Positions 10,831-18,950 of a stretch of DNA of 64,000 nt are shown piece by piece. The notes beneath the pieces are model-generated. The model had not been told where the DNA came from and ran no database searches. It was given only the letters and a program-made list of their open reading frames with translations. Numbering within the stretch: the stretch's first letter is position 1; each line of letters opens with the position of its first letter. A program made the translations under genes and the position numbers. Source of the stretch: Blepharisma stoltei ATCC 30299 (lineage: Eukaryota; Protista; Ciliophora); NCBI GenBank assembly GCA_965603825.1, contig CBFDEM010000023.1, positions 124,001 through 188,000 on the forward strand, given 5' to 3'.

Positions 10831-11085
10831 CCTCGCCTCATCCAATAAGATATCTTATACAAACTACTCTTCCTTTTCTTGAAATGCACGTTTATTTATG
10901 CCACAATAGGCATCGGCGGGTCAATAATTGGATTTATTACCTTATTGTTCTTAATTCTAGCTAATTATTCTCAAGGAAGTTCCTCCGCTGAGAGATTTGT
11001 AGGAGCTTTGCTTATTTTTTATTTCATTTCTAAATACTGAGCATGGTATGCCAAAATCTCCAAAGCGAATTTTTTGGCTGTTTTA
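10831..11085 (+). pseudogene. Relic fragment of the small multi-TM gene family (copy of ~18491-18845)
   Basis: Clear nucleotide similarity (cgcctcatccaat, cttgaaatgcacgtttattta, ggcgggtcaata, gctaattattctcaaggaagttcctcc, gagagatttg). It has 1-nt indels, no start codon, and only a patchy tail remnant after 11036. Confidence 0.8.
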
Positions 11086-14056: not shown

Positions 14057-14554
14057 AAAAAAAGACTAAAAAGTAGATCCCTTATAATTTCCTCGCCTCT
14101 GACAGCTAAAATTAAAAATAAAAATTATCATTAAATTAAAATGGCGATATAATTTATAGCTAATAAATATATTTCCATCCTTATTTTATGTAGACTAATA
14201 AAAGGCTAGATTTTTCTATTTGCTCTGATAAACTTTTATAAAACCATACTCGATGCATTTGAGATATAAAATTGTCAATTTTTCTTTCATGAAAATATTG
14301 CTTTAAAGAGAGCAAAAATATTAGAAAAACCTGAATTTCCTGAAATCAAACCTCCTAAGAGGTCAAATATTTTTGTAATATAATGCTTTTAAATCTAATT
14401 TTACAAAATAAAGCTTCTATATTGGTAAACTAGAAATGTTAGCATAATATATGAAAAGAATAATGAAGCAAATTATTATTCAATTTTTTTGGTTATTTTA
14501 TGTATTAAGCTTAAAGAAAGTTTATGAGACTAATTTCTATAGTCATGAAAGTAA

Positions 14555-16969
14555 ATGGATCTGTCCTCAACTAATTTCAACAACTATGACATAGAAGCCG
14601 CAAAAAGGAATGTAGAATGTGACTCATGACTATTTTTAGTGTTATATTTTATTCCAATAATCCTCTCATGTCTAATACCAGATGTAGAAGCTGCCCTAAG
14701 TTTTATTTTCTTTTTCTCTTTAATGGGTGCTCCTTATTGACTTACAGCTGTTTTAGGGTTCCTAGCCTCATCCAATGAGACGTCTTACACCAACTGCTAT
14801 TTCTGTTTCTTGAAATGCACATTTATTTACGTCACAATGGGTGTCGGCGGGTCAATACTTATTTTTCTTGCTCTATTGCTTTTAGTTTATGCTAATTATT
14901 CTCAAGGAAGTTCCTCCGTTGAGAGATTTGCATGAGCTTTACTTATTTTTATGTCATTTCTGAATATAATTTGGTGAAGGCTCTGAAGACATTATTTAAT
15001 CAAATGTGATCAAATACCCAACTACCTCTGCTCATGAAGAAAGCGCATATTGTGCTGATTCCGAAGGTGAAAGATAGCAAAAATCCTCAAAATCTAAGGC
15101 CGATCACTCTGATAAATGCTATATACAAACTGTTTGACAAATTGGTGGCTGAGAGACTACGCAGAGATATCACAGAAAAGAATATCATTCACCCTTCTCA
15201 AGCGGGCTTCATCTCAGGCAGAAACTGTACTGAGCACATCTTTAGCCTTCAAACCATAATAGCGCTCAGAGAAAAAATGTCAAAGCCAACGTATTGTGCA
15301 TATCTAGACCTAAAAAAGGCCTTTGACTCGGTACATAGAGATCTGCTTTTTAAAACAATGCTGGATAGAGGCATCGATTCAAAACTGGTTGCGATAATTC
15401 AAGAAATGTACAAAGACGAAAGCAGCTCAATCATCATAAATGGCCGTTTAAGCAAATGGATCAGTATAAACAAGGGAGTCAGACAAGGAGGCTGCTCATC
15501 GCCATTATGTTTTAATTTTATACCGAACGAGTTAGCCTGAGAATTAGAAAATAAAAAGCTTGGTGTTGCAATTCCTGGAGGGCAACGATTGGGCTTCTCC
15601 TGTATGCGGATGACGTAGTGCTAATTGCGGAATCATCGACACAGCTGAATAGGATGTGCATGGTAGTACAAGACTGGCTGAATCGATATAAACTTCTCCT
15701 AAATATTGCAAAATCGAATGTTGTTGTCTATCACTCCAGAGATAGACCGCGGATAGAAATCAATGGGGAAAGGCTCCAAGTCATAAATAGCTACAAGTAT
15801 CTAGGGTACCTGGTTGACAAGAGGATTGGAAACACTACACACTTAAAAGAGAGATTGGGGAAGATGAAAGCCTCTGTTGGAACATTCATGGGAATGCTGC
15901 ATGCAATGAAAGGCGTAAGGATAGAAAAGAAGAAGACGATAGCTAGAGCATGCATCAACACAGTCGCACTATATGGCACTGAAGTGTTTGCTACATCTGA
16001 GAACTACAACAGCGTTTTAGAAATGATGGAGCGGCTTCAGAGAAGGTATGCCAGAAGACTACTTGGAGCGCCCATGAATGCATGCAACGAGACTGTATTA
16101 AATGACGCAGACATAGTTAGCATTGAAACGGAGCTAGACAACAGATTGCTAGCGTTCAGATGTAGATTACAGACCAAAGGGAATGCGATCATCCAGGATT
16201 TACTACAAATTAATAAACAATGATTATTACCATGGGAAATAAGATGCAGAAAGGTGCAAGAAAAATACGGGCTGCCTGACGATGGTATCAATGATCATTG
16301 AAGTAAGATGAAAATGAGATCTGATGCCAAAAAAATAGAAAGAATGTCAACTGAAACATGAAAAACAACTGGATTATACAGGACTCTGATAGGAAGCGAA
16401 CCGAAGGATGGACTGCCGCTATATTTGCGGGGCACTCCAGCAATGAATGGAGCAACCAGCATAATTTTTGGATTAAGGGCAGGCTCAAACTTTACCAATC
16501 AGTGTAGATATACTAGGCACATCATTGACAGTCCTGATTGCAAATTCTGTGGAAAGCCGGTAGAAGATGAAGTACATGTAATTGAAGAATGTGAAGCATA
16601 TGAAGAAAGCAGGATAAAGATTACTGAATTTTTGAAGGGATTATTAAAGGATGACTTCTCATTGCTAAAATTGACAGAGATAGTTTTATACAGCTGAAGG
16701 CTTGAACAAGTCATGAAAAAGAAATGCTGAAGGGAAATAGAAGCTCTCAACAAAAATGTGAATGGCTTTTTTAAAGAAATCTTAGAAGAAACCTGTATTT
16801 CCAAAATCCAAATACATCAGGAAGACTAGAAACTAAAGCGCAATTCTTTACTCCGGCTGAAATAGAAATCGGAGGATATTCTCAATATTATCCTCAGCAA
16901 TATCCTCAACAATCTCATCAGTATCCTAATTTTAATCAAGGCAACTATGGAAGCATTAAGATGCCTTAA
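14555..16969 (+). pseudogene. Small multi-TM gene (paralog of 18285-18950) disrupted by the LINE fragment; halves 14555-14971 and 16781-16969
   Basis: MDLSSTNFNNYDIEAAKRNV...IFMSFLNII, then insert, then LRRNLYFQNPNTSGRLETKAQF...GSIKMP-TAA. Both halves are still stop-free. Confidence 0.9.
14967..16784 (+). mobile_element. Non-LTR (LINE-type) retrotransposon internal fragment: RT domain plus C-terminal CCHC zinc knuckle; truncated at both ends; one frameshift at ~15590
   Basis: Motifs LIPK..NLRPITL, QAGF..GR, YLDLKKAFDSV, GVRQGGCSSP, LYADD (YADD 15603-15614), YKYLG, C-x2-C-x8-H-x4-C (16539-16592). GC content is visibly higher than the flanks. No endonuclease, own stop codon, poly-A or TSD. Confidence 0.92.
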
Positions 16970-17077
16970 AATAGATAATAATGAGCTAAGCTAATAAGAA
17001 GATCAATAATTCTCTAGCTTTTAATATATTATTCTAAATACAATTATAATTATAAAATTAAATCTTAAATTTTATAG

Positions 17078-17187
17078 CTAAGGGATAGATTGCATAGGAA
17101 TATATTGTGGATAGGGAGCAAACTGATAATTTAAACTACAAAAATTATTTGGATGCAACTGAGAGAGCAATTCCAGCAAAGCTAATG
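17078..17187 (-). pseudogene. Relic 3' end (~36 codons) of the 19057-19629 gene
   Basis: Near-identical to 19057-19166 (LALLELLSQLHPNNF...QYIPMQSIP); similarity stops abruptly at 17187. Confidence 0.85.
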
Positions 17188-17401
17188 TCCACTGAGTATA
17201 AAAGTCTGACTCCATATTATTTCAATTTTTATATTTTAGAAATCAGAGGGAGTAATTGTTCTACAATTTTTTGAATAGAATCGAAACTCCAAATCAAGAA
17301 ATTAAGCACTAAAATAATTCTACTATATATATACTTTTTAAGATCTTTTATAATTAAGCTATAAAAGAAGCGTATGAGCACTATGGTGATTATAAACATA
17401 A

Positions 17402-17865
17402 ATGGATGATGTGCCCGCGCCTATTTTAAAGAATGCAAAAAAGGCAATATATTATTTTAATATATTCTTAAAATCAGAATTACATTGATTAAAAATAACT
17501 TTTCATTATAAATCTATATAAGATATGATGGGTTGATATTTTTAGTTACGTATTTTATTTCAGCTACTCTAGTAAGTCTTCTCCATAGTCCTCATATCCC
17601 TTTCAGTTTTATTTGGTATGCTCCCTACTTAATTATGGCTTTTTTAGCATTCCTTGCTTCATCAAACGAAATATCCTATATAAACTGCTATTGTTCGTCC
17701 CTTTGATGCATGCCTATCCTCTTCATAGGAAGTTTTATTTGGATATCGATGGAGTATTATCATCAGAATATACCTCAGAATATACCTCAGAATAATCTTC
17801 AGGATAAAACCCAAAAAGAAAACCCTTATAATATTCTCGCTTCTGAAGGCACTGAAATGACTTAA
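17402..17865 (+). CDS. Small TM-family paralog (130 aa after removing 17450-17520), interrupted by an IES-like insert and internally shortened
   Basis: MDDVPAPILKNAKKAI|RYDGLIFLVTYFIS...YAPYLIMAFLAFLASSNEISYINCY...QNIPQNIPQ...EMT-TAA. Aligns to AKRNVECDSWLFLV.YFIP and APYW..LGF.ASSNE in the paralog; the upstream region is also homologous. Confidence 0.75.
17448..17520. mobile_element. Putative retained internal eliminated sequence (IES), 71 bp TA-to-TA
   Basis: Very AT-rich insert bounded by TA at 17448 and 17519, with inverted TATAT ends. Excision leaving one TA restores frame and gap-free alignment to paralogs. No GT-AG. Confidence 0.72.
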
Positions 17866-18284: not shown

Positions 18285-18950
18285 ATGGATCTGTCCTCAA
18301 CTAATTTCAACAATTATGACATAGAAGCCGCAAAAAGAAATGTAAAATGTGACTCATGACTATTTTTAGTGATATATTTTATTCCAATAATCCTCTCATG
18401 TCTAATACCTGATATAGAGGCGGCCCTAAGTTTTATCTTCTTTTTCTCTTTAATGGGTGCTCCTTACTGACTTACAGCTGTTTTAGGATTCTTCGCCTCA
18501 TCCAATGAGATGTCTTTCACAAACTGTTATTCCTGTTTCTTGAAATGCACGTTTATTTACGTCACAATGTGCATTGGCGGGTCAATACTTATTTTTCTTT
18601 ATCTATTGCTTTTAGTGCTAGCTAATTATTCTCAAGCAAGTTCCTCCCTTGAGAGATTTGTAGCATCTTTACTTGTTTTTATGTCATTTCTGGCCATAAT
18701 TCACTCAGCTTGTGCATTTACTCTGTGATTTTTTGCGAACAGACGTGCAAACCGCTTAAAGGATTTAATACTAAGAAGAAACCAGTATTTCCAAAATCCA
18801 AATACGTCAGGAAGACTAGAAACTAAAGCGCAATTCTTTGCTCCGAGTGAAATAGAAGTCGGAGGATGTTATCCTCAGCAATATCCTCAACAATCTCATC
18901 AGTATCCTTATTATAATCAAGGCAACTATGGAAGCGTTAAGAAGCCTTAA
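18285..18950 (+). CDS. Small multi-TM protein with Q/Y/P-rich tail, 221 aa (intact copy)
   Basis: ATG 18285 to TAA 18950 open with TGA=Trp; about 4 hydrophobic segments; tail YPQQYPQQSHQYPYY. Confidence 0.88.

Follow-up and report, generated by a model that had tools for sequence, protein, structure and literature searches.

How does a piece of a retrotransposon come to lie inside a somatic gene without the marks of retrotransposition? This question is raised by a locus of the ciliate Blepharisma stoltei ATCC 30299, whose somatic (MAC) genome has been published (PMC9942806, PMC9942856). In this locus, a 1.8-kb internal piece of a LINE replaces about 70 bp of one gene, named here gene A. An earlier note on the same DNA had explained the insert as an excised piece of a germline retroelement, ligated into a cut made during DNA elimination. 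The replacement is confirmed by the present analysis; the origin of the insert is unsettled, and in-place partial elimination of a germline LINE insertion is ranked first, a tentative preference that falls short of an even chance. The window referred to below is the whole stretch of 64,000 nucleotides analyzed (C23:124001-188000), and positions given without a contig are positions in it; other coordinates refer to contigs of the somatic assembly that was searched (64 contigs, 41.46 Mb). Open reading frames of the window read TGA as Trp (UGA=Trp code; translation with code 4). Joins are marked by a caret.

The Interrupted Gene and Its Paralog

Genes A and B of the window are tandem paralogs, the product of which is a four-TM protein of about 210 amino acids with a tail rich in Q, P, and Y. 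Gene B (18285-18948) is intact. The 5' part of gene A (14555-14971, plus strand), which encodes the 4-TM membrane protein, is about 90% identical to B 18285-18701, and its 3' part (16785-16969, plus strand), encoding the C-terminal Q/P/Y-rich tail, is 85-92% identical to B 18771-18948, ends at the stop codon TAA (16967-16969), and is severed from the 5' part by the insert. The host frame of the 5' part enters the insert and meets a stop after about 40 codons. Homology between A and B ends at 14971 (B 18701) and restarts at 16781-16785 (B 18771-18774), breaks that bear out the description of a LINE piece standing in place of 69 bp kept in the paralog and that set the insert at 14972-16784. The segment of B equivalent to the DNA lost from A (18702-18770, plus strand; 69 bp) ends TM4 and encodes FANRRANRLKDLI; the loss comes to 72 bp with an ambiguous CTTA/CTAA assigned to the host. 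This 69-72-bp segment is kept in a distant paralog as well (C23:194948-195629), and it is the ancestral state.

Two further observations concern this segment. At 10833-11031 of the window, a third, decayed member of the gene family (83% identity) loses its homology to B at 18691 and seems to regain it near 18766, with about 74 bp absent; this gap is roughly the segment that the LINE replaced in A, and the divergence is too high for an exact join. With the ambiguous A at 16784 counted as host sequence, the insert reads 14972-16783 and measures 1812 bp against a host loss of 72 bp. Perhaps by coincidence, each length is divisible by three, and the most abundant size class of IESs in this species is likewise 72 bp.

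The LINE Fragment and the Natural Ends of the Element

The insert (14972-16784, plus strand; 1813 bp) is an internal fragment of a LINE (non-LTR retrotransposon), 99.2% identical across this span to C54:679341-681153. A Pfam scan finds in it the reverse transcriptase (RT) domain RVT_1 (PF00078) in two frames, at 15076-15809 on the plus strand (C23:139076-139555 and 139504-139809; E values 2.8e-24 and 2.1e-07; 86.4 and 31.3 bits), and the protein shares 35-48% amino-acid identity with other LINE/RT loci of the same genome. Its RVT_1-type RT and its relationship to the APE-RT elements of the genome place it in the non-LTR (LINE) class. The continuous reading frame attributed to the fragment does not exist, since a 1-nt deletion private to this copy (15583-15584, plus strand) shifts and splits the RT frame: C54 has an extra A, and every contig of the sequencing runs X1-X3 described below has an extra A or G behind 15583. 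On the 3' side, the frame does cross the right junction into host DNA as had been claimed, ending at TAG 16825-16827. A protein search for a full-length element gave only matches of 59% identity or less within the length range searched.

DNA matches to the insert above 90% identity are found at four places in the assembly, the insert itself included; the sisters are C54:679341-681149 (99.2%), C25:282847-283522 (94%), and C58:88777-89259 (92%), and the copies were compared with each other, not with a consensus. Both C54 and C25 run past the equivalent of 16784, reading AAAATCCGAATAAATTTAGAG and encoding KIRINLEKNLAQ followed by a stop, and they continue for about 62 bp through this stop codon to a common last base (CCGTAATTTAT); a relative on C13 (47% amino-acid identity) reads 18 codons past the same point. 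Position 16784 is thus not the natural 3' end, and the window copy is without the last ~62 bp of the element and without its own stop codon. On the 5' side, X1 and X2 contigs that match 14972-15266 with one difference carry 227-255 more 5' letters, ending in GTGAATTAATCAAATATGGAGGGGATGCTA, and continue in frame as ELIKYGGDA^MVKALKTLFNQMW (ELIKYGGDA^MVKAL), a continuation that is plausibly LINE ORF, so that the window copy starts mid-ORF. It is thus truncated at both ends, as the earlier note had held. A 30-mer from the natural 5' continuation does not occur anywhere in the 41.5-Mb somatic assembly with up to 3 mismatches allowed; its presence in X1 and X2 contigs means that longer copies exist outside the assembled somatic genome.

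The C25 copy shows what a normal insertion of this family looks like. This element (about 282787-283522, minus strand; locus C25:281347-285022), 94% identical to the insert and with the same natural 3' end CCGTAATTTAT, carries beyond that end a (TAT)n tail followed by TTATTTGGAGAATT, and the latter sequence stands before its 5' junction as well. It is a canonical, 5'-truncated copy with a 14-bp target-site duplication (TSD; TTATTTGGAGAATT), a simple-repeat tail, and a 42-bp internal deletion, and the family therefore inserts canonically. In contrast, the window copy has neither TSD nor tail and lacks the last ~62 bp; neither feature was found at the insert, where 69-72 bp of target are absent instead. 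The description of an insert with no TSD and no tail thus stands, although not the expectation of poly-A, the natural tail of the family being (TAT/ATT)n; and with both ends truncated and host DNA lost, the insert is not a canonical target-primed insertion. The C58 element (88777-89259, minus strand; locus C58:87277-90759) is a 483-bp internal fragment, 92% identical, also truncated at both ends and without TSD.

The C54 copy (C54:679336-681215) is flanked by genes Q and P in a tandem array (C54:672000-684600) in which two paralogous gene types alternate. Comparison with neighboring units places host DNA up to GGTAATGT and shows a post-element linker of conserved length; this copy reaches the natural 3' end, has no TSD, and shows no visible loss of host DNA. 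The RT is encoded in an intact frame, although 1 nt is absent near the 3' end, and an in-frame ATG lies exactly at the 5' boundary. The 76 bp to its left were considered as a 5' UTR with a TSD (ATAT-TAAGATTT) and rejected, being host DNA repeated in the neighboring paralogous units. A single discrete mobile unit made up of what C54 and the window copy share was also rejected, because C54 extends ~62 bp further 3' and 4-5 nt further 5'. A TAAGAT/ATCTTA motif occurs at three places, two at the C54 locus (positions 1411-1450 and 3376-3390 of C54:677841-682649) and one at 17508-17522 of the window; a hairpin bearing it, TAAGATTTAAGCAACTTTTAGTCTGTAAAATCTTA, is conserved behind every Q gene of the C54 array. 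Immediately 3' of the C54 element stands a perfect palindrome, ATCTTATATAAGAT, and a near-palindrome is found upstream of the small TM gene of the window. Finally, two copies of another LINE family, on C60 and C45, are 97% identical, and the one on C45 has an internal gap of 851 bp, which is probably the IES-type deletion that PMC9942856 illustrates for Contig_45.

Recurrent Breakpoints

The ends of the window copy recur in its relatives. The 5' end of C54 (TGCTA^TGGTG) is 4-5 nt upstream of that of the window copy, and C54 has TGCTA before TGGTG in common with the natural element. The 42-bp internal deletion of C25 has its 3' edge on the same TCTTAA as the end of the window fragment, and both element-side ends of C58 touch or adjoin TA. 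Two of the six other breakpoints thus fall within 5 nt of the window ends, for which our own arithmetic, taking breakpoints as even over ~1880 nt, gives a chance of ~0.002; these coincidences point to breakpoints that are not random.

The substitutions tell of relationship. The window copy differs from C54 by 12 substitutions and two indels; it has G at 15148 in common with a contig bearing the natural 5' continuation, and G at 15647 in common with a non-C54 contig, both unlike C54. At least five of its states (15013, the deletion at 15583, 16136, 16403, and 16523) are private, occurring in no X1-X3 contig, which is weak evidence given that run contigs lose rare variants. These differences suggest that the window copy is an independent germline copy; it has its own history and is not a fresh copy of C54.

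A target-primed insertion that happened to be 5'-truncated near the present end, and from which two later germline deletions took tail and TSD as well as ~70 bp of the gene, would accord with the canonical habit of the family (C25) and with neutral decay of a gene already disrupted. It is nonetheless improbable: two separate deletions would have to fall in a copy only ~0.3% diverged from its nearest relatives, and both breakpoint coincidences would be left to chance.

The Locus in Sequencing Runs

Logan contigs of several sequencing runs bear on the locus; X1 and X2 are from the same study (~83 Mb) and X3 is from another (44 Mb). Such contigs break at repeats, and their depth and holes prove nothing, for which reason depth was set aside as an argument that the soma under-represents this locus. 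Short-read libraries from sucrose-gradient fractions have been described (PMC9942856). Against gene B, X1, X2, and X3 contigs show zero differences. The contig holding the insert start has the natural 5' continuation in X1 and X2 and the C54 flank in X3, and X1 and X2 appear to be richer in germline DNA than X3.

Over 14650-14972, X1 and X2 contigs again show zero differences, and the match is lost at exactly 14972; past this point come 226 (X1) or 18 (X2) letters that fit nothing on the stretch, or the contig end if minus-strand coordinates are flipped. A second continuation thus exists at the left junction in the runs of the strain itself, and its nucleus of origin is something that we infer. 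Among the contigs listed, none bridges either junction; the loose-end sequences of run contigs do not occur within the window; and a second copy of either flank above 88% identity, which could explain the alternative contig, is found nowhere else in the assembly. The right flank (16800-17199) has almost no contig cover in X1-X3, a hole of the kind that proves nothing. The reading of the left junction is complicated by a second version of the 5' region of A (14489-14680) in the strain's runs, which matches neither the reference nor B and does not occur in the assembly; its six differences are at 14520, 14522, 14563, 14608, 14615, and 14642, and it may represent an allele, a paralog left out of the assembly, or a copy confined to the germline.

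An assembly artefact, in which reads of different molecules were joined through the repeated LINE, would agree with the lack of any listed contig bridging a junction, with the private variants and frameshift unseen in the runs, and with the barely covered right flank. However, the two gene halves flank the insert in the correct order and orientation, unlike a chimeric join, and absence from Logan contigs, which drop rare variants and break at repeats, is weak evidence; such an artefact is very improbable.

Another run, X8, gives contigs 90-99% like the window and hence comes from another strain or a close species. Two versions of its contigs cross the 69-72-bp host segment, one contig joins B-type coordinates to downstream sequence specific to A (18839 to 16858), and depth is 0-12 over the insert vs. 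250-360 on the flanks; from these three features it follows that X8 holds the empty site. Two observations on the neighboring small TM gene are added here. X8 skips 28 bp at 17744-17773, in the CAGAATATACCT tandem repeat of this gene, a repeat-number difference between strains. An X1 contig matches 17304-17627 only and extends beyond this stretch, without a match, by 607 letters on one side and 41 on the other; the end at 17626/17627 falls on a TA (CCCTA^CTTAAT), and the extra letters may represent germline-only DNA in that gene.

The Junctions

At the left junction (14969-14974), host ATAATT (CTGAATATAATT) is followed by TGGTG of the element (TGGTGAAGG), a join that is blunt or shares 1 nt (T); the counterparts are ATAATT^CACTC in B and GGGGATGCTA^TGGTG (GCTA^TGGTG) in the natural element. 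At the right junction (16781-16786), element AAATCTTA (AAAGAAATCTTA) is followed by host GAAGAA (GAAGAAACC), with at most 1 nt (A) shared; the counterparts are AATACTAAGAAGAAACC in B and TCTTA^AAAATCC in the natural element, and CTTA vs. host CTAA leaves a 4-nt ambiguity. The joins ATAATT^TGGTG and TCTTA^GAAG (host reads CTAAGAAG) have no TA common to both sides and lie off TA on the host side, which is not the form of a TA-bound IES junction. No flanking TA/TTAA duplication was found at the insert and target DNA is lost, so that it does not have the form of a cut-and-paste (PiggyBac-type) insertion either. Both element-side breakpoints touch TA; the claim that the fragment ends at TA therefore holds for the element and fails for the host, where the joins are blunt or share 1 nt. 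A random junction with 1-nt ambiguity touches TA in the 1880-nt element with a probability of 0.25, and element-side TA contact alone is not significant. In B. stoltei, three quarters of IESs are TA-bound, and ~16% to about a quarter are not (PMC9942856); given this share, the missing shared TA makes an excision origin less likely. As for the end motifs, seven of the nine letters of TATAATTTG, given as the fragment end at 14965, are host sequence, so that it is no end of the fragment, and the ends resemble those of a nearby 71-bp element only in so far as they loosely fit TAT rrr ttt t, the weak consensus published for IES ends. The pattern TA(T)RRRTTT, loosened after the data had been inspected, has two sites in the 1880-nt element, one of them exactly at the right end of the fragment and pointing inward.

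These junctions show no TSD, a 3' truncation, a target deletion, and microhomology of 0-1 nt, which are features of endonuclease-independent insertion or double-strand-break capture, reportedly in their classical signature. The insert could thus have arisen by germline capture, a LINE cDNA or DNA piece having been end-joined into a double-strand break in gene A with loss of ~70 bp of target, as in endonuclease-independent LINE insertion or retroelement cDNA capture; the junctions would then be the same in germline and soma. This explanation fits the junction anatomy best, with its missing TSD and tail, 3' truncation, target deletion, and joins sharing 0-1 nt, and it agrees with private differences accumulated over a long germline residence and with the empty site in the other strain (X8). 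The likeness to endonuclease-independent insertion of mammalian L1 and to capture of yeast Ty1 cDNA covers the missing TSD, the absent 3' end and tail, the target deletion, and the blunt or 1-nt joins; there, however, element breakpoints are random, whereas both of those in the window recur in other copies and the left junction has another form. Capture leaves unexplained the C54 start within 5 nt of the 5' end, the coincidence with the C25 deletion end, and the second continuation that the strain's own contigs show at exactly 14972, and it is placed second, as possible but doubtful.

Alternatively, the insert could be a germline LINE piece that a domesticated PiggyBac-type excisase cut out from TA to TA and that was rejoined, in the developing soma, into gene A at an excision site of ~72 bp, programmed or cryptic. 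In its favor, the source element brackets the fragment as GC-TA^TGGTG and ATCT-TA^A, the form of a TA-bound IES; the inward-pointing TA(T)RRRTTT site stands at the right end, albeit under a pattern loosened after the fact; the host loss of 69-72 bp has the size of the commonest IES class; and the reference junction is not dominant among run contigs. On the other hand, the host-side joins are off TA, the TA contact on the element side has a chance of 0.25 per junction, the private differences occur in no contig, so that no donor is seen, and the same LINE segment is retained, not excised, at C54. Furthermore, a somatic paste is not heritable and would have to be a one-off event in the current macronucleus, yet it became the assembly consensus. 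Such a ligation is unlikely and has the least direct support. Nothing shows the ligation of a free excised piece, the private differences fit a separate germline copy better, and joins that lie off host TA with the look of generic blunt or 1-nt end-joining are what the earlier note itself had set against its proposal.

Possible Partial Elimination in Place

The reading ranked first, incomplete removal of a germline LINE, is more likely than the pasting-in of an excised fragment. A LINE of this small, young family would have entered paralog A in the germline, within the 69-72-bp segment, and during development of the somatic nucleus the editing machinery would have taken out only some of the insertion. 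Excision would remove the 5' part of the element, for which there is no somatic counterpart, along with adjacent host DNA, and would also remove the last ~62 bp together with the remaining host segment, so that the 1.8-kb RT core would be retained and gene A left broken. In the scan-RNA model of Paramecium and Tetrahymena, elimination passes over sequence that the parental somatic nucleus contains. Scanning of this kind by small RNAs would likely have spared sequence already present in the parental soma, with the C54 copy protecting the new insertion in trans. This would explain why the retained piece starts almost where the somatic C54 copy starts; scan-RNA protection in Blepharisma, and in trans between dispersed LINE copies, would have to be assumed, and it would account for the 5' end and not for the 3' end, since C54 keeps its tail.

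Partial elimination would account together for the double truncation, the missing TSD, the host loss, the alternative form at 14972, and the private variants. It is favored by the contrast with the canonical C25 sister, by the natural 5' continuation found in X1 and X2 contigs but not in the somatic assembly, by the C54 and C25 breakpoints that coincide with the window ends, by the loss of match at 14972 in X1 and X2 with no contig across the joins, and by the at least five private differences with the G at 15148 and 15647 unlike C54. It is favored as well by the published partial excision of LINEs in the B. stoltei soma. Against it, both somatic junctions are off a TA repeat while most IESs are TA-bound, and the bare right flank (16800-17199) in the strain's runs is explained by no model. 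A longer element at the germline locus, with both junctions as excision joins, is something that we infer, as is the trans-protection step.

LINE sequences have been described in the soma of B. stoltei, with IESs inside retrotransposon genes and with loci that are partially excised or that some of the population lacks, together with recent high-identity LINE copies with unrelated flanks and 24-nt scan-type small RNAs (PMC9942856). The window element is of the same organism and class (APE/RT LINE, RVT_1) as those published (Seah et al. 2023, PMC9942856). Its family, in contrast with theirs, is tiny in the soma, where it comprises two copies of ~99% identity and two fragments of greater age. Internal IESs of the published elements measure ~175 bp and lie in the endonuclease domain, whereas in the window both element ends and ~70 bp of host are absent and the joins are non-TA. 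The window locus is not named in PMC9942856 or its supplement, where no locus-level IES or LINE tables were found. It is a new instance, with an unusual outcome, of the published presence and partial excision of LINEs in the Blepharisma soma.

Biological Meaning

What the locus means for the ciliate depends on its origin. If an excised piece had been rejoined, genome editing would offer a DNA-level, reverse-transcription-free route by which retroelement sequence spreads into somatic genes; if a LINE piece had been captured at a break, the insert would reflect an ordinary form of break repair. If partial elimination is the true origin, the locus is a clean natural case of genome editing that does not rescue a gene hit by a young retrotransposon, and homology to a somatic copy at another place may determine which part of a new germline insertion survives. 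Trans-protection, if true, would carry the scan-RNA protection model over to the earliest-branching of the ciliate lineages studied. Under elimination and capture alike, gene A represents a null allele, specific to the strain, of a gene for a conserved 4-TM protein.
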